DNA of 64,000 nucleotides from Amoeboaphelidium protococcarum X5 (taxonomy: Eukaryota > Fungi > Aphelidiomycota), in assembly GCA_023515725.1 (NCBI GenBank), contig JALDTO010000215.1, positions 521,053 through 585,052 of the forward strand. Direction: 5' to 3'. The translations under genes and the position numbers were made by a program. Below, piece after piece: positions 4,213-44,830 of the stretch. Under the pieces are notes generated by a model. It saw nothing but the letters and a program-made list of their open reading frames with translations, had not been told where the DNA came from and searched no databases. The stretch's first letter is position 1. The number at the start of each line of letters is the position of its first letter.

Positions 4213-5292
4213 TCATTAATAATCCTGAATTTACTTTACAATCTCTTCAATTATATGTTCATGGATACGTTCGCTTTGTAATCTCTGCAGAATATCTCCG
4301 CGTCTATACTTACAGCCTTCTAAAAGTCTCATAATATTAGGTAATAGTGGATTTTCTGTATGCTACACTTTTGATTCAACATGTTTCTAGATGAGACATC
4401 GATGGATATGCAGAACGATATTAGTACCATCATAGTGTTAGAGCGTGTGTTGAAAATCAGGCGTGTATCCGTACTTGTATTCCCACGACTGCAATCGATC
4501 TACTTCATTTTAAACTTCTTAATCCTGCAGAGTATTTTCAGGATCAATATCTTCATAGTCGCACTATTAATCGGTCAGTTACAAGGAACTCTAAAACCCG
4601 TAAGTGAGAGCATCACAAAAGTCTTCAAATCCTGTGGTTAGACACACGTCACGTATCCTGCCCACTTGAGACGTGACACTCTTTATGGCTTAACTTTGAA
4701 TATTCTCACTCGTTGAGCATAAGTTGTGTAGGCCAAGATATTTCGTTACATTCTCAGGCTCCGAGTCAATCAGCAGAGTACCATGATGGAATGCACGATC
4801 ACGAATTACTCTATACGCACTTCCACCAACTTTCTTTTGTATTCCATTTTAAGGGATAGTGTATTTGTTACCAGTATTATCAGACCGCGGAGAGTTGCGA
4901 TAACTATAATTCAGCCAAATGTCGTGCCTAGGTGTTGTGGACACGGGCAGATCCAAGCGATCGTTCAACGACCGCACTGCAATGTCAAGAGACTTTGTTA
5001 AAGAGAATTCTTATCGAGGCATCATGAAAGTATAACAAGCATTGCCAATATCATGATAAACTGTACCACCACCAGATTACCGCCGTATCAGCGGAACGCT
5101 ATCTGTCTTCATCAGATCCAATCGCGCTTCTATAAATGGATTCTGATTCCTACCCAAGACGACACATTGTTAATTACGCCAAAGATACAGCATATACTCA
5201 TCGCTGGGATTCATCGAATGAAATAATTTATTTTCTAATGCTAAATTATAGTATGCATTGGTTGACCGACTTCTAACCACGCGCAACTTCAT
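4213..5292 (-). CDS. Lipoate-protein ligase A family (Aim22/LIPT1-like)
   Basis: STNAYYNLALE, LYLWRNQQCVVLGRNQNP, RRQSGGGTVYHDIGN, LQSWEYKYGYTP. Confidence 0.92.
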
Positions 5293-5386
5293 TACAAGTT
5301 GAGATCTTCCACTTCAGATCTTTAGCGAGATTCTTTTCCAATGACGAATTAGTTTTTATTCAGGTAAAAATTACAATTTAGTAGAA

Positions 5387-6106
5387 ATGTCAAGCGCTCA
5401 GGCTGTCAGTGATATTGATGCGCATAGTGCGAAATAATCAGAAAGTCAAGAAGAGAGCCGCCTAACGTGTCCTCATCGACATAATACATCTGGTTTGGTG
5501 GATTTGGCTCATACCGCTGCACCTTAGACGCGTCCGTGTTCATCAGAATCTGCTCGTGATATAGAATCAATATCAGAAATGGAGGCTTAGAATGGGCAAG
5601 ATGGACCTGCATTACCTGACCGACGTATGACAAGCTCTATTCCCAAGAGCAAGGATGGTGAGAACTGGGTATATCCATCATAGAAGTAGTTTTACTCTGC
5701 CATGAAGAAGAAGAATTATAATCCTGATGAGCAGGACATGTCCACCATTGTCCCCATACACAATCTCATAAATGAACTCGCTTGGACCAAGATCCTCCAA
5801 TGGGAGAAGGAGTATGCTAGCACATGCAAGAGCGGCCCTGTACTGAAGAAATTCATGGGCAGACCGGATGATCCATCGCCACGCGCAATATTCAACACGT
5901 ATTTCTCCTCTATGGGCCGTCCGTTTGATCGACACGATTGGGTGATTGATCGCTGCGGTAAAGAGGTGACGTACATATTGGACTTTTACAATAGACCAAC
6001 TGAAGCATAAGATCAAGTTCCCTTCAAGATTTTCGTTGATGTCCGCCCCTCTCTCTGGTCATTAGATGGTGCTTATCAAAGATTTAAAAAGTTCTGGTTT
6101 GAATGA
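5387..6106 (+). CDS. Holocytochrome c/c1 synthase (heme lyase)
   Basis: CPH motif, SSIP, WVYPSQKQFYSAM (both Q are TAG), IHNLINE, PFDRHDW, VDVRP. Confidence 0.93.
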
Positions 6107-6229
6107 GCATTATAATAGATAGGTGAATCTTTTCAGTATTACACCTTGATCTATAACGATTTCAATCTTTAAATTTTGCATATTGTGTAAAACAAATATC
6201 TATTAAAGACTTTTAATACAGCAGTGTCA

Positions 6230-7513
6230 TCATTTCTACTATTACTATTTAGTCGTGGTCACTCTCCACTTGTCTAGGAAAATGTCCCAATCGACGTAGG
6301 TGCCGCGAAGAAGGCGCATACCATTCTCACCCACTGTAAATCCTTATCTGCCATGTAGGACGCGTCTATTAGCAAATACGGCACACTCACCTTCTGTCAG
6401 TTTGAGGGAGCAGAGCATAGACTCGTCTTCGATAATAGATTGGAAATGTTAGAATGCCTCATACCACTTGTCCAGAGTATAACGAGACCCCTTGAACACC
6501 TAAAGACTCAGTGGAGCCATGAACGGGGGAGAATAATTGACTTCAAACGGCGACGGCTTATTCCATGAATTAGACTGCAGGATCACTGGTCGCCAATATA
6601 TCATCTAATGCCCATTGTTATGGTAATGATACGGTATTCTGATACTAGACAGGGTGTGATAATGCTCTTCGTTTTTCTACTTCAACAATTACACAGCCTT
6701 GTATGAATCCACAAAAGTCGACTCTCCACCGTCAATGTTCCGATTCTCAACACAGTGCAGTAATTGCAGTCCTGGTGGAGACTCGAAATACATTAGATCC
6801 ATATGCAATCCCAGGTAAAGATTGGTATACGCAATATTCTTGGCCTAGTGCTCAGACATCACTTTCCAGCTCTTACCATAGAAAGTCTCTCTAATCGGTC
6901 CAATTCTATAGGCGATGGATTCAACTGATTCAACGCCTGCAGTGTTAGACTAAGAAGGGATATTCTAAATGAATGCTAGACCATAATTCTACAACTACTG
7001 ACTAAACTTTAGGAATGTATTATCATCCTCTAAATACTAGCGATAATCAAAGCAAATCTCTGCCCTATTCTAAGTGCTTTCGAATAAAGTCTTTTGATCC
7101 CACAGAATATTTCTGTACTCAGGATTCTACGGAGGATGATGCTTCTCTTTCTGCAAGAGCCAACTGACTGGATACTGGCTCTTGTGTGGATGATCATTAT
7201 GCTTGCTGCTTCCAAGTAGATTTTATTTCCACTATACCTCTAAAACGCCTCCATCATTATTTTACGCATTATTATGATTATTCACTAGCTAACACTGAGA
7301 TACAGTCATATCAAGGGGAATGTGACCAGATGAGATCAACTTTTATTTTGTAGTGGGATGTACACACTGAGAACACTAGCAATTATCACGCAACCAGACG
7401 TATGGGATCTCTTTCGCCAGACCACGCTCAGGATCTGATATCAAAACTCCTTTATTCTACTACTTGACTGTGGTGATAAATCGTGTTTACAACCTACCCA
7501 AAGCTTTGAGCAT
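6230..7513 (-). CDS. Gamma-butyrobetaine dioxygenase-like Fe/2OG (TauD family) enzyme
   Basis: WLRDNCQCSQCVHPTTKQK, IGPIRETFYG, NIAYTNLYLGLHMDLMYFESPPGLQLLH, GGESTFVD, RLLRGTYVDWD; ends TGA TGA. Confidence 0.9.
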
Positions 7514-36979: not shown

Positions 36980-39900
36980 TCATTGTTACTTACAATCGGC
37001 TTCATCTTGCTGGGGTTTTGACTTGAGATTTCTGTTGCGGCTTGGCGGTTACTGCTACATTAGAACATATCATTTTTGGCAATTAATGACTTTACAATGT
37101 ATGTGCGTAAATATATTACCGATTGAGTATCATTAGCAGCTAATTTACTCTGTCTTGTATGGAATACAATCTTCGGCTGCTCTTCACTAGTGTTGTCCTG
37201 CTTATCAACCACAACATACTCGTTCTCCTTACTCTACACAATCGGATTTCATCGATAACAGATTTTACAGTCTGCACAAGATTTAGCAACGTACCTCCTA
37301 ATCTTAAATGCTGTGCTACACCTTCTTCGATTTACTACTAACTTCGCGTTTGGCCTTAAGCTAGTCAGATTACATTTGTTACAGAGACTGCTCCAATCTT
37401 CGCACCTGCTGGGCATCTTGATTGCGCAAGATTATACTTTGACGAAGCTCTTTTTAGGCATCTTCCTTCTCAGCAGTTAATTGTACAACGCGATCTTTCA
37501 AAGCTTTGATGAGATCTAAATGCTCAGACTCTTTGCCAAGTAACACGGAACTACCTCCAACTTGAGTAGGTGCCTGCTACATTGACTTCACCTTGTAGTG
37601 AAGTTGTTTCAACTCTTGATCCTTCATTCTAATCTCAGACTACAACTGCTCTGTAAATTGAATAGATTTATCGAGTTCACTACAAAATATGTGACAATAA
37701 TGTATTACTTGAGCTTATGAAAGACATCGATTAACGTACCTCTTCATTGCAGCAATCACCGCTTCCAATTATTTGCTCTAGATTTGAAAATTCTTCCTGT
37801 CGTTCATGAGCTATGTCTTGAGCACATCAGACTTTTTAAACATCTCAGAGTCATTCTACATAAAACCAAGCATTATTATGAGTTATAATCTAAAATTAAT
37901 CATTATACAAAGTAATACCTTTAGCGAAGTCAGCTCAGATTCGTATTTTAACTATGCAGCACGATGCTTCTCCACTTCTTCTTTATATGCCAGCTTTAAG
38001 GCTTCGAAAGACTAGACATCAATCTACTGACCTTTTGGCTCAACTTGAACCAACTAAGACTGGAAGCTCATACGAATACTTTCCAACTATTCCGTGATCT
38101 TCAAATTTAAACTCTCGGAGCACATATCCATCGACGAAGAATACCCAGCGAATAAAGCAGAACTGGACTGAACCAGATTTAGGAGCATTTACTGCAAATT
38201 TTGAATTTCAAGCTTCAAAGCAGCAAATTGTTGACTGCGATGAACACAGTGACTATTGAGACGATCAATACCTGCCTGCTTCGTGGCCAAGCTAGCATTG
38301 GCACCCTGTAAAGCTTCATTGATCCTATCTTTTTCAACTAAGGAACCATCATACAACTATTACTGTTCCAGCAATAGACTATTGAGCTAGTCCACCTTGC
38401 TCTGGAGATCAAGAACTTGAGACTCAAAATCTGCAGACGTAGTACTTAATTTATCATTCAGAGCCACGACTTACTCAGATTTCTACTACTTTTACAACTC
38501 TAGCTATAAATGCTTAGCAGACAAAATATCATGCTACTCTTTCAAACACTAGATCTCAGTTAGACCAGAGTCAACTTACTTCTTCAGGGTGTTACAAACC
38601 TCAGTCAGCCGCTGAACATCAGATTACAATACCGAATTTTCAGATGTTTGCATCTAAAATTTCTGCTCCAATGTTGTATAAACTAATTCAGATTTCTCAC
38701 CTTCTTACACTTTTAACTATAATTACAGTTGCAGGTCTTCCTCCCGATTTTGACAACCTGACAGCTGTGACTATAGCTCTTTAAATGAGCGCTCAGACTC
38801 TTAAAGCTAACTCCGATATTCTTCTTTACTTTGATCATATACTGATTATTAGGCAACAAGCACATCAATCTCAGCTTACAGCTTATTCATCGACTATTGC
38901 AAAGACTCTTTCTCGGACTACATAGTGGCAACTTCGATCTCAGATTACTTCAAGAGTTCTTGCAATACAGTCACCTATTCTCCAGAGGAGCTTTGACTTT
39001 CACTTAAAGATTACTGCAAGCGAGATATTTTCTGTCGCTTCTCCTCCAGCTCCAATATCAACCTATCTTTAACACATTACAGCTGAGCTATTTAATCGGT
39101 AAACGATAGCTTCTGAGCATTCCAATCATCCAACTGATTTTAGAGTTAAGCATTCTGACTCTCAAGATCATCAGTCAATTACTCAATCTCGGCCTGCTTG
39201 GATAATAATTCGTTCTACAGCGACAGAATATCCTAAGACTGTACAGACAATTTACCATTATTAACATTACGTTCATAGGTGATCGTAGCAATTTAACGCT
39301 CAAAAGCTTCATTGCTCTACCTCTCACTGAGAACCTGGCTTGTCAAGTTATCTACTTCTGATAGGAGACGCTCAATCTCTTCATCTTATTCTGAGATTTA
39401 CTACATTCTCTACGTCATTTGATTATCAAAATCATACTGCTACTGCTCCAATTTCAAAGACAGCCCCTGTTGAGCAGATTACTTTTCAGCCTAGACGCGA
39501 TCCAGCTCCAAGACTAAACCACTGCACTTCAGATTACAATTAGCAACAATGGGACCGGATTCAACAAATGCAATGACCAACTACTACTAGAGTTCATAAG
39601 CAGCAAGGCCTTCTTACAATAATTATTTACTCAAAGCTTACTACTCTTCTTACAATTAATCACAACGACTCTCTGCAAGGGAGCATTTATCAACTGCAGC
39701 GTCAAGCTCTTTGGAGGCAGATTCTAACTGTTGTTCAAGAGTTTCTATGCAGTCTTCCTAAGAATCGCATAAGGCAGACATTTGTCGATGTTCCAAGGAT
39801 ATCTCCAAATTATTTTATGTTAAATATAAGAGTTGTTCATCCTATTATAGCCTGTCATCCCTCAACGACTTGACTTAAACTTCCAAATCTTCGATAACTC

Positions 39901-42043
39901 TCTTGTTTTCTGCCAGCTCAAGCATTTGCTTCTACTTCAATTCGCTTAACTAAACAGTATACAACTCAGAGACATCATGGACCAGCTTTCTGATTGCGAC
40001 TTAGGCACCATCGCTAAAAGACAATTCATGAGCTGATTACAACAAAGAGTCTTTCAGCCCTTTCACCTCATTCAACTAATCCTATAGAGCCGTAAAACGA
40101 CTGTCGACGCACTGAGTTTAAGTAGAGCTATCTATCAAAGCTGAACATTGTCCTAAATCTGAGGCAGGAGACTACGGATGGGACTCTTATCTGGAAGTAG
40201 AGATTAGATTCTCTTGCAAAGCCAAACTGACACTTTCGAGTTATTATTATAATTTAGACTTTTCATCACAGATTTCCTTATACCAAGACTAAATTTCCTC
40301 ATTAGACGTTTGAAGTAGCTAAATCTCTGCTGACATCCGGCTGGTAAGTTCTTACTTTAGTTGCATCAGCTAATCGGCCAAAGAATGCATATGATGAGGA
40401 AGACTGTCGACGACATCCCCATTGACCAAAACAGATATTAATGAAGCAATGTCATCTCCATCCAGCTAAATCTTACCATTCTGAACTTAATGACGACTAA
40501 CTGAATTTGAATCATGCTTAAAGTCATCAACTTTCTAATCGTTCACCTCTTGATTTATCTAATCGTCTTGATCATTCATATCATCAGTCATATCAATGAC
40601 AAGACGCGCAGGTTCTACAGCTTGAACTAAATTATCCGCAGATTCAAATGAAACTTATCTTTACTGCTACTACTACCGGCCAGGAAACCAAGTTTATCTG
40701 CGCAACATTTTCTACTTCTTGATTGGTGGTGCTTCATCATGCGTGTCAATAACATGAGGATTCAAAACCATTTTCTCCATCTGGCCAATCTTTGCGGTCA
40801 GAAACTTGATACGGTCCTCATACTCTTCCAGCGACTTTCTGTGCTCCTGAGCTTCGGCTTCGATAGCGATTTTCTCATTAACCACCGACTCAAACTTATG
40901 ATGCAGATCCACATCCTTCAATGAAGAGAGTTGATTCTTCAATTCAGAAATCTCATTCTAATACCTCTTGAGCATAACTTCATCAGATACAATTTCATTC
41001 ATCTCTGGGCAATTAGTAATGGTCTTGGCACGGGAGGCGAACTTGAGTGTAGAGTACGTTTCTTCAATAAATTTATTGGCAGGACTGGCCGTACAGATGA
41101 TAGCAGTCTTGGCATTACCACCTAGAGAATTTTACAAGATACGGGTCAACTTTGAGTCTCTATATGGCACATGGCTGGAATTTTCACTCAATTTACTAAT
41201 CACAGTGCCCAGAGTCAAGAGAGATCTATTGATGTGACCACCTTCACGCAATCTGGCACCCTCCGCTCCAGTGTAACTACATCGTTCAGAGCCAGCAAGA
41301 TCAACCAAATTTAGTTATGACACTTTGACGGCAGATACAACTTGTTGAGATCCATTATCGTTTCCACCACCACTGACATCACTTCCAGCTGAAGTATCAC
41401 GACTTTCAATCACCATCTAGAATAGAGTGTGCGATCGAGAAGAACGTTCATTCATATTGGTGACACCAACATGACGATTCCTCTCACCAATCTGCATCAA
41501 CTGTATCACTTCTTCCACACTGGTAACAATCTCTTCACGAACATTGCCAACGAATATCTCACGTTCCGCAGTCTCATGAATCTTCAAGTTATCATTCTCT
41601 GGGCACAGTAAGTCCTTGATGACTTCATTGTAAATCTCCAGGTATGACACACGAAGAAGAAATTCACGACTGGGAGTATTCTGAATCTCACTGAACAGAT
41701 CCTGCATGGCCAGAGGAATAATACCAATCTCCTTGCCAGAACCTTGCATAGTATGAGTCTTACCAGAATTCGTCTGGCCATAAGCAAAGATGGTAGCATT
41801 GAAACCATCAAGACACGACTTTATCAAAGGCTAAACAGAAGAGTAAACTTGTGCATTATTCTCCTGGTGAAATACTCTGTCAAACATAAACTACTATGCT
41901 GAAGATAGAGTCTTTCCACCTTGATCCACCTGATATAGAATTGAACGATTCCTGACATCCCACGCAGACCAACTACCACCAGCAACTTCTTTCTGACTAA
42001 TGGGACGAACTCTAATCACAACCTGAATATTGCTATTACTCAT
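36980..42043 (-). CDS. CENPE: Kinesin-7/CENP-E with long coiled coil and C-terminal CaaX (a few 3' introns)
   Basis: [57 protein letters not shown]; ends DCKQQ-TGA. Confidence 0.9.
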
Positions 42044-42281
42044 GCACTTTATACGTCCAATAATTTACAATGACAGAATGTGAGACTTGAATTATATGGA
42101 AAATGCTCCCCAATTCCGTAGTACCTACCACTAAGGCAAGTAATGAATGAATGGTAAAGATACCGAGAGGAGAAAGGTAACGGCTGAAACAAAATGAAAC
42201 ACGTACAGAACGATGGGGAAAATGCGATTAAAGCATTTCAAAAATTTCTTTGTCATGATCAAATTCATTTGCATCCAAACC

Positions 42282-43380
42282 TCAAATATCAGCGGCTTCG
42301 ACTGGAGGAATGTACTTTCTTGGAATGAACGGTAGCGGAACTTGTCCATTGTGAGTGATAAGCCATCTAGCCAAGAATAAAATGTCAGCAGCCCCCAGGA
42401 TATCGGCATGCTGAGACTTCTTGCATCATGGATAGTAGGAAAAGTCTTTTCTTCTGATAACAAACATTTCGCGATGCTTTCTAAGGCATTCAAAGTAGAG
42501 AGTAGAAGTCATTATCTCTGACATAATAATAATAACACGAGCTTATTCATTCAACAAAAAAGCGAACTTCTTTAGCGCGTGCTGGCCATTCACACTGGAG
42601 CTTTCCTTTACATAACTCCCATAATACACTATTAGAGAATCTCTCAATTGCTAATTGAAATCGAACACACTAAGAACTTACTTTACCATTTCTAAAGACA
42701 CTTATTTCGAGTGGATATAATTCTCCAAAGTCAAATGCAATATCTACATCTCACTGTAAAACTGCAATCGTCGAAACTGCCAATGTAATTGATAAGAGCT
42801 CTTTTGAACTCATCACCGGCAACAGTATAGAAGTGCTTAGCGAATTAACGGGCGCATCTAGAGAGTTCCAAGAATCTTTGATGAAATCCATCACCACCAA
42901 AGGCATCAATAAACTATTGCCTGCTTAAGACAAGAGTTTCAGCACTATCCAGCGGGAGATCTTCAGCTTTAGAACGCTAACCGATATCTTCAGGTCGATA
43001 TACAGCAATCAAGTTGTTGAGACCCGGATCAATAGCAATCTCTTTTACGTTTGTAAAGTCCACCGCTGGAACTTGATAAACTATTGACTAGGAAGAGTAT
43101 ACTCTATCGAGCAGAGACCATCCGTACAACTGATAAATATTCTTTGGCCTTGAAATCTTTTACTGTTAACACTAAACAAACTCTGCTTCGGCATCTGCGT
43201 TTATCACAGCCCCAACCTGTTCAGCAAACTCATCTTCCATGGCCTGAACGAGTGGAATTTCCGCAGTAAAAGTTGAATAGGTAGTGATTTCCTTTGATTG
43301 ATTCTGTTTCTTCCTTATAGCGCGTAACTCTTTATTCTCCTTCCACTATCCAACTACATACAGTATATAATCTCTAAAAT
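42282..43380 (-). pseudogene. Fanzor1-type (TnpB-like RuvC) RNA-guided nuclease gene, 5'-truncated, lightly decayed
   Basis: RuvC-I KEIAIDPGLNNLIAV (D at 43028); LQFYSEMQILHLTLENYIHSKQ..MVKQVL..LIVYYG..LKKF..RVIIIMSEIMTSTLYFEC (E at 42516); YP*C..HADILGAADI (D at 42402); GQVPLPF. One frameshift near 42790 and in-frame TGA at 42426. Confidence 0.8.
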
Positions 43381-43387
43381 ATATTAA

Positions 43388-44830
43388 ATGACTGAAATGT
43401 CTCACTTTGCTAAATCAAGGCGCATTGCTCATTTTGGACAGGATGTATGGTAGATTAGCTTCCTTTGTTCATTCTAATTCATGACAATAACTTTATTATT
43501 ATGAGATTTTAATCATGTAGGTCCATCTTCTCTCCAATGGCATTGTATTGTAAGGCTGTTAATCTTGGACAAGGATTTCCCAACTTTGAAGCTTCAACAT
43601 TCGTTAAAGATGCTGCCAAGATGGCTGTCGATTCCAATTTTAATTAGTATTCTCCTCCCAAAGGAATGCCTTAGTTGCGAAAGGTTAGTAGTTTTTTTAG
43701 AACGCAATATATCGATATAATGTTCTGTCGTAATGTAGGTATTAGCTGAGGAGTATGGGCCTTTGTTGAATCGTTAGTTGAGTAGCGAGACTGATGTTAT
43801 TGTTACAGCTGGAGCTAATGAAGGTATGTACGCTGCTTTTCTTGCATTCCTCAATGATGGTGATGAGGTGTTGTGCTTTGAACCGTTCTTTGATTAGTAT
43901 GCACCCAACATTCAAATGTGTGGCGCCAAGATGAAGTTTTGTCCTCTACTTCCTAAATCTGGTACTAATGCTCACTTTAACAATGGTAATACTTCTGCAG
44001 CGGACTGGACCTTTAATATAGAATATCTTGAATCACAGATTTCAGCTCAAACTAAAATGATTGTGGTCAACACTCCTCATAATCCGGTTGGTAAAGTATT
44101 TAGCCGCGCAGAGTTGGAATAGATTGCAGAAATTGCGATCAAGCACAATCTTATAGTTATCAGTGATGAAGTGTACGAACGTTTGATTTATCCAGGCGCT
44201 GAACATGTTCGCATTGCCACTCTGCCTGGCATGTGGGACAGGACTATAACTGTTGGAAGTGCGGGAAAGTCATTCTGTGTCACTGGATGGCGCGTTGGCT
44301 GGCTCTTGGGACCCCAGCATTTGATTAATCCAGCGCTGATTGCCCACTCTCGAATTGTATTTTGTACCAATGCGCCACTTCAAGTTGCTATCGCAGAAGC
44401 TCTGAAATAGAGTTAATCCAATGGATACTTTGAAAAGTAATGTCAAGAGTATTTGGAACGACGCGAATTCATACTGAAGATATTTAATGAATTAGGATTA
44501 CCTACAGTTGTACCAGATGGAAGTTATTTCACTCTTGTAGATATAAGTAGCTTAGAGATCCCATAGGAAAAATTAAAGGAATCCGAGGAGATTGAAAAGA
44601 TGTTCTGTTTGGATGGAATAGTACCTCAAAGAAGTCGGGATTGGCAAGTTTGCAGATGGCTCACCACTCATCTTAAAGTAGCGGCTATCCCACCTGCCGA
44701 ATTTTACAGTTAGCAGAATTAACATCTGGCTTCAAACTACGCGAGATTTGCCTTTTGTAAAGATTTAGACACTCTAAAGCAGGCCAAGGAGAATTTACAG
44801 AGACTTAAACAGTATATTGTCAAGAAATGA
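43388..44830 (+). CDS. BNA3: Kynurenine aminotransferase (class I PLP), introns 43450-43520 and about 43684-43738
   Basis: QDVWSIF, AVNLGQGFPNF, VTAGANEG, EPFFDQY, NTPHNPVGKVF, SDEVY, GSAGKSFCVTGWRVGW, RFAFCK. Confidence 0.95.

Follow-up and report, generated by a model that had tools for sequence, protein, structure and literature searches.

What is the 1.3 kb of DNA that separates two divergently transcribed genes, one for a kinesin and one for an aminotransferase, in the window (by which we mean the whole 64,000-nucleotide stretch of Amoeboaphelidium protococcarum DNA analysed here)? An earlier note, made from the letters alone, had claimed that this gap hides the remains of a Fanzor1 gene, a eukaryotic TnpB-like RNA-guided nuclease, written in the host's genetic code, in which TAA and TAG are read as glutamine. 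We find that the remnant is very probably a pseudogene fragment of a Fanzor/TnpB-type nuclease that can be read only with TAR as Gln; it is an ordinary dead gene fragment of a known kind. Its family membership is established through a group of code-6 open reading frames elsewhere in the genome that match it, a host-specific Fanzor family that is called family B below.

The locus and the host code

The neighbours of the gap are those named in the earlier note. On one side the kinesin gene (PF00225 motor domain, E 2e-52) is on the minus strand with its ATG at 42043, and on the other a class I/II aminotransferase gene (BNA3-like, PF00155 match) is on the plus strand and starts just beyond 43345. 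The spacer is mostly occupied by the remnant, whose stop codon is 240 bp from the kinesin ATG. TGA is the sole stop codon of this host: the window is tiled with TGA-delimited open reading frames of 350 to 1767 codons, and within them TAA and TAG make up 4.1% of all codons and 55% of the glutamine codons. The kinesin TGA-delimited ORF has 1767 codons: its frame (window 37208-42508, minus strand) meets no TGA in the 465 bp that precede the ATG and enters the remnant in a different frame, so that a code-6 gene finder could extend the kinesin model too far, into the remnant.

Reading frames and motifs of the remnant

Code-6 translation of the minus strand from 43244 to 42285 gives 319 codons of Fanzor homology, which contain 12 in-frame TAA/TAG codons, one internal TGA and one frameshift. 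The earlier note had correctly reported a single frameshift and a single internal TGA (42426-42428); it placed the frameshift at about 42790, while the two blastx HSPs in different frames abut at 42795-42800, and it counted about 13 in-frame TAA/TAG where we count 12, all of them between 43244 and 42285. The reading frames of the remnant hold one internal TGA versus 6 and 13 in the two off-frame sets, so that its coding frame can still be recognised.

The features of the remnant, all on the minus strand, are arranged as follows: A deletion junction at 43245, where about 1,555 bp of the duplicate C233 locus (below) are absent from the window, is followed by the acidic-linker segment of the Fanzor ORF (AMEDEFAEQVGAVINADAEAEF.., 43149-43244), which aligns to the acidic linker of family-B ORFs. 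The first reading frame (42797-43148; blastp to the family-B loci L043 and L044, E 3e-13) contains the DPG-type RuvC-I motif IAIDPGLNNLI at 43007-43039. The second (42285-42794; blastp to L043, E 6e-33, 41% identity over 154 aa) is also matched by the A1 profile at C214:563439-563609 (E 2e-22), C214 being the window's contig. It contains LQFYSEM..YIHSKq..MVKq..IVYYGSY, which ends at 42612 and whose last element, IVYYGSY (42612-42632), has a glycine at the canonical RuvC-II position, and then IIMSEIMTS with the shifted RuvC-II glutamate (42504-42530), the two halves of a decayed zinc ribbon, TLYFEC (42486-42503) and YYP*C (42423-42437, the asterisk being the internal TGA), the RuvC-III motif HADILGAADI (42381-42410), GQVPLPF (42327-42347) and, after RuvC-III, the C-terminal tail GQVPLPFIPRKYIP. 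The terminal TGA is at 42282-42284.

Every motif listed in the earlier note was thus recovered, and so were the three D/E/D residues that it said remain, namely the aspartate of the DPG RuvC-I, the shifted glutamate and the RuvC-III aspartate. The zinc ribbon is decayed as claimed, since it reads YFEC .. YP*C with two of its cysteines changed to tyrosine and the TGA lying within the second pair. The remnant has no start codon and lacks the N-terminal half, or about the first 400 codons, of the gene. The upstream stretch 43246-43345, which the earlier note had included as Fanzor sequence, is flank: the C233 locus carries the same stretch, within an 89.5% identical block, ahead of its own N-terminal half, and it therefore lies outside the Fanzor coding region.

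Identity of the remnant

Is the remnant truly of Fanzor/TnpB descent? In code-6 blastx it matches the family-B paralogous ORFs at E values of 4e-39 to 1e-31 and about 40% identity, and it is collinear with amino acids 423-689 of a 705-codon family-B ORF. Its stop-free pieces match loci that bear PF07282 across the genome in collinear order, with E values down to 2e-7. PF07282 has 41 matches in the genome, 36 of them over the cut-off and many with internal TAA/TAG, and family-B loci read through TAA/TAG score 26.0-27.5 bits against a cut-off of 26.3. Family B in turn carries the claim that the remnant derives from a Fanzor/TnpB-type nuclease gene written in the TAA/TAG=Gln code. The profile tests proposed in the earlier note came out in favour of the family, with its PF07282 and hhalign matches, while the remnant by itself reaches no curated threshold: PF07282 has no match on the window or the remnant, and among Pfam and NCBIfam models its stop-free pieces match only PF01385 (E 0.079, on the RuvC-I piece). 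Because the remnant itself is below the PF07282 threshold, its membership rests on its paralogues, and because unbroken family-B loci pass PF07282, the failure of the remnant's zinc ribbon in that test reflects decay rather than ancestry. PF01385 and the bacterial TnpB model NF040570, searched across the genome, have no match to family B.

Comparisons between families agree with this assignment. The family-B profile aligns by hhalign to a second Fanzor family of this genome, family A (E 4e-6), and to L029 (E 2e-7), both among the clearer Fanzor families of the genome, over 129-145 collinear columns, and family A matches PF07282 at E 4e-12. The language-model neighbours of P0001, a public family-B member, are PF07282 clusters (0.96), and 23 of its 30 nearest named Atlas clusters carry PF07282. 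Searches of two family-B profiles and of single pieces against PDB sequences gave no Fanzor or TnpB match; family A has weak TnpB/Fanzor matches there (E 0.1-0.3). AlphaFold2 modelling of P0001 (328 aa, 18-row alignment) gave a pLDDT of 43.5, which is too poor for fold comparison.

The motifs themselves are of the expected kind. Where the remnant has IAIDPGLNNLI its relatives have VDPG, VDAG or ADLG at RuvC-I; after the glycine at the canonical RuvC-II site the glutamate of IIMSEIMTS follows 34 residues on, directly before the ribbon; and HADILGAADI aligns to YHADLLGGAN and HRDVNAARN of the paralogues. Jiang 2023 (PMC10530073) described a glycine or proline at the canonical RuvC-II glutamate with a compensating glutamate about 45 residues C-terminal, near the zinc finger. 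By analogy with characterised Fanzors, the ancestral protein would have been an RNA-guided nuclease carried by a transposon.

Family B in the genome

The earlier note had suggested a search of the genome for intact paralogues, and unbroken TGA-delimited relatives in the same code do exist. The family-B C-terminal profile finds about 15 loci, and the 11 loci that were compared fall into at least 5 old lineages with 28-46% identity (the subfamily tree leaves out another four family-B loci, on C205 and C264). The remnant stands alone among them, its only closer relative being a wreck on C235 with 51-55% identity. This C235 wreck (L039 about 4840-6900, G000:C235) is truncated on its upstream side by a Ty1/copia-like retroelement, whose translation includes a gag zinc knuckle and integrase-like motifs.

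The code-6 ORFs of family B are 705-749 codons long and contain 25-30 TAA/TAG and no TGA; from the first methionine L043 encodes 697 aa and L042 706 aa. Unbroken examples are C212:694906-696996 and C155:875684-877801, with 25-29 TAA/TAG glutamine codons. TAA and TAG account for 3.6-4.1% of family-B codons and 50-58% of its glutamine codons (3.8% of codons in the remnant), and dN/dS between family-B copies is 0.33-0.42, from which it follows that the family has been maintained as protein-coding sequence under the TAA/TAG=Gln code. The suggestion in the earlier note that a Fanzor family evolved under this code is supported, the family's TAR share being that of the host.

Is such a family hidden, as the earlier note had it? 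Against 1.84 billion public representative proteins the family-B C-terminal profile has three matches, all of them truncated "hypothetical proteins" of A. protococcarum; public proteins include KAI3632874.1 on the window's own contig and KAI3637901.1 on C155. The search brought up no public protein that matches the nuclease half of the copies that appear unbroken. In the standard code this half falls into pieces of which the longest are 83-86 aa, and the survey of Jiang 2023 used stop-to-stop ORFs of over 100 aa; ORF surveys that stop at TAA/TAG cannot see family B because its nuclease-half pieces are this short. The word hidden thus suits the unbroken copies, which have no public protein, but not the three truncated members in GenBank, nor the Fanzors of the sister aphelid A. 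occidentale, since the Saito 2023 supplement already lists the hits KAI3658238.1 and KAI3657820.1 in that species. Among the rows listed from the Saito 2023 table there is no A. protococcarum entry, and in the literature searched we found no paper that links Fanzor with Amoeboaphelidium or aphelids.

Three family-B copies share a unit of 5.7 kb with about 95.5% identity and sharp boundaries (L042 903-6596, which is G000:C155:874902-880595; L046 1044-6715; and L041 1151-6827). The Fanzor ORF takes up 2.1 kb of it and is followed by 2.8 kb of apparently non-coding DNA, and short inverted repeats that resemble subterminal hairpins are present at both ends (left ACCAC..GTGGT, right TACCTAC..GTAGGTA). 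Besides the Fanzor ORF the unit shows no convincing reading frame and none that looks like a transposase, and neither TIR nor TSD was established. Alignment of flanks, which the earlier note had proposed as a way of finding the element ends, thus delimits a unit in these three copies and gives no definable ends at the window copy. With its divergent subfamilies, its unbroken ORFs and its dN/dS, it is conceivable, if somewhat doubtful, that family B is a Fanzor clade confined to aphelids, deeply diversified and active to this day.

Other Fanzor-type genes were seen in the genome. Family A has at least five copies (L021 4484-6571, L022, L023, L024 and L026, on C154, C212, C13, C205 and C264) with the same 729-730-codon TGA-delimited ORF, which contains 6-8 TAA/TAG (24-32% of glutamine codons) and has a GC content of 45-47% versus 40% in the host; by comparison with family B, family A gives the impression of an invader that is younger or less adapted to the host. 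Directly downstream of the family-A copy on C13 lies a family-B fragment (G000:C13:151004-151343, L023 about 5000-5420) of the L040 subfamily, with 78% amino acid identity to L040. Two further Fanzor-type ORFs, L027 5705-8632 (C264) and L028 3275-6391 (C98), are much longer than those of families A and B (976 and 1039 codons) and contain 44-46 TAA/TAG.

The duplicate locus on C233

A second locus, on C233 (L038), carries both of these genes, arranged as in the window, and the C214 (window) and C233 regions are about 90% identical. By blastn L038 1-3789 corresponds to window 47053-43246 (89.5% identical), and L038 6357-10000 corresponds to window 42205-38579 (92% identical), a block that includes the 5' region of the kinesin gene (42043-42205, minus strand). 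Between these blocks the two loci differ as follows: C233 carries 1,555 extra bases at window position 43245, which contain a family-B N-terminal half (blastx E 3e-18; the family-B HMM matches L038 4871-5246 at E 8e-23). The 96-bp acidic linker at 43149-43244 corresponds to L038 5345-5439 (88.5% identical by blastn); in the window it shares a reading frame with the RuvC half, and nothing else of the old gene is common to both loci. The RuvC half itself (window 42206-43148) has given way at C233, with sharp breakpoints, to an unrelated stretch of 917 bp; aligned to the window's RuvC half, this stretch scores the same as shuffled sequence, and the family-B HMM has no match in it. The absence of the N-terminal part from the window, as stated in the earlier note, is thus the absence of about 1,555 bp that C233 retains.

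The 917-bp replacement (L038 5440-6356, G000:C233:537439-538355) contains a repeat of about 260 bp that recurs with 89-91% identity at C192:554719 and C214:183501, and a 200-codon code-6 open frame with acidic and basic runs. The contigs of a second strain have only C233-like junctions and nothing at least 80% identical over 42206-43143; holes in contigs prove nothing, so this absence is a caution and not a contradiction.

How might the two loci have arisen? The whole gene appears to have been inserted before the copies diverged, because C233 keeps the front half without the back half, and the simplest reading of the sequences is a single full-length insertion, after which each copy lost a different half. 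In this inferred order of events, a full-length family-B gene would have lain between the divergent aminotransferase and kinesin genes before the C214 and C233 copies diverged. In the C214 copy a 1.55-kb deletion would have taken out the N-terminal half, after which the frameshift, the TGA and the two Cys-to-Tyr losses in the zinc ribbon would have accumulated; in the C233 copy the RuvC half would have been replaced by the 917 bp of unrelated sequence and part of the N-terminal half would have survived. The argument for a full-length ancestral copy comes from the shared linker, which is collinear with the RuvC half, and not from a second surviving RuvC half, and it makes such a copy probable. 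The in-frame TAA/TAG codons of the remnant are very probably inherited glutamine codons and not products of decay, because unbroken relatives carry them at the host frequency under purifying selection.

Alternative readings of the remnant

Could family B be an unrelated zinc-ribbon or RNase H-like protein, in which short motifs happen to mimic RuvC? This would explain why the solved Fanzor and TnpB structures are unmatched by sequence, why the family-B PF07282 scores are barely over the cut-off and why the P0001 model was unusable. We nevertheless consider it highly improbable, since the DPG RuvC-I, the glycine at the canonical site, Glu-TS-CxxC, the second CxxC and hADxLGaaN follow one another in the expected order and at the expected distances, the alignment of profiles with unambiguous PF07282 families extends over so many collinear columns, and most of the nearest named Atlas clusters are PF07282. 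Even less probable, to the point of being nearly negligible, is that the remnant is a working shortened gene which makes a RuvC-only protein by programmed frameshifting, or by splicing, with read-through of the TGA. All three D/E/D residues are kept and TGA is strongly depleted in frame, as such a gene would require, but there is no start codon context and the region upstream of RuvC-I is deleted, the frame is broken both by the frameshift and by a TGA, the one stop codon that this host uses, the zinc ribbon has lost two of its four ligands, the nearest relative (on C235) is likewise a wreck, and no public protein model covers the remnant.

A dead gene could still have been co-opted as regulatory DNA, supplying promoter or 5'UTR elements to one or both neighbours, and this idea is compatible with the pseudogene reading. 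The closeness of the remnant stop to the kinesin ATG and of the aminotransferase start to the other end speaks for it. We regard it as unlikely, since C233 keeps both genes, with flanks that are 89-92% identical, although its DNA is altogether different where the window has 42206-43148, and the conserved blocks adjacent to the genes (43246-43480 and 42043-42205) fall outside the RuvC half. No sign of a function of the remnant was found. A surviving guide-RNA scaffold at 42085-42285 was also considered and is unsupported: the segment is largely host flank, the 240 bp between the remnant stop and the kinesin ATG show no unusual structure (fold z-score -0.62) and have no Rfam match, and because 42043-42205 is conserved at the C233 locus, which has no RuvC half, that block is not an element-specific end or scaffold. 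The DNA downstream of the remnant does not resemble the 3' ends of the other family-B subfamilies and their downstream DNA, and no tRNA gene was found near the window within 36-50 kb. A decayed fragment of a Fanzor-type gene therefore remains our preferred description of the remnant.

Significance of the remnant and of family B

The remnant can serve as a dated marker: it indicates that a Fanzor gene with TAA/TAG glutamine codons was already in place here when the genome of A. protococcarum became duplicated, which makes family B an old resident of the genome rather than a recent arrival. Of modest interest is family B itself, which is old, restricted to its host, adapted to a variant code and largely missing from protein databases, as is the reciprocal pattern of decay in the C214 and C233 duplicates. 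For the mining of Fanzors for genome editing, it means that such genomes need the right translation table and that their genes must be recoded before expression. Should family B indeed be active, no RNA-guided nuclease family before it would have been shown to live and radiate under a reassigned-stop code, and the window remnant would be among its oldest fossils, datable by the genome duplication. That Fanzors occur in the sister aphelid was known from Saito 2023; for family B, the public proteins searched include no full-length record.

Comparison with known Fanzor and TnpB systems

To which subtype did the gene belong? The earlier note had taken the motif order and the placement of the glutamate as signatures of Fanzor1, a step that does not hold, as Jiang 2023 and Yoon 2023 (10.1101/2023.08.09.552727) give both for all Fanzors and pro-Fanzor TnpBs, the latter defining Fanzors and pro-Fanzors together by DPG plus the shifted glutamate. 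That the remnant and family B are of the Fanzor1 subtype is consequently unproven, since Fanzor1 shares these signatures with Fanzor2 and some TnpBs. Only the size of family B (about 700 aa with a long N-terminal region) points towards Fanzor1: its ORFs of 697-706 aa, with RuvC-I near residue 440-500, are well above TnpB in size (this is a property of the family and not of the remnant), and an enlarged REC/N-terminal region is a Fanzor1 feature according to Yoon 2023 and Saito 2023.

Fanzor1 proteins such as SpuFz1 of Spizellomyces punctatus and PpFz1 of Parasitella parasitica (PDB 9CF0) are likewise large, with a long N-terminal region before RuvC-I, and have in common with family B the DPG RuvC-I, a RuvC-II whose canonical position is non-acidic, a glutamate displaced to immediately ahead of CxxC..CxxC and an hAD..N RuvC-III. 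Family A of this genome aligns weakly to PpFz1 across the nuclease region. The solved Fanzor1 proteins have no significant sequence match to the family-B profiles, family B differs in carrying 25-30 in-frame TAA/TAG per ORF, and the window copy differs further in being broken and without its whole N-terminal half. The Fanzor hits of A. occidentale belong to a different species.

On the Fanzor2 side, the mimivirus protein ApmFz2 (L79, PDB 9B0L) and pro-Fanzor IS607 TnpBs have the same DPG and shifted-glutamate signature, and giant-virus PF07282 clusters are the nearest language-model neighbours of the family-B protein. Fanzor2 proteins, however, are compact and TnpB-like and reside in IS607 elements with a serine recombinase, whereas family-B ORFs are about 700 aa long, and inspection by eye of the 5.7-kb family-B unit showed no apparent recombinase ORF. 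The bacterial ISDra2 TnpB (IS200/IS605; PDB 8H1J and 8BF8) belongs to the same superfamily, with a split RuvC domain and a zinc-ribbon insertion (PF07282), but it has its glutamate at the canonical RuvC-II site, is only about 400 aa long and has its omega RNA at the right end of the element.
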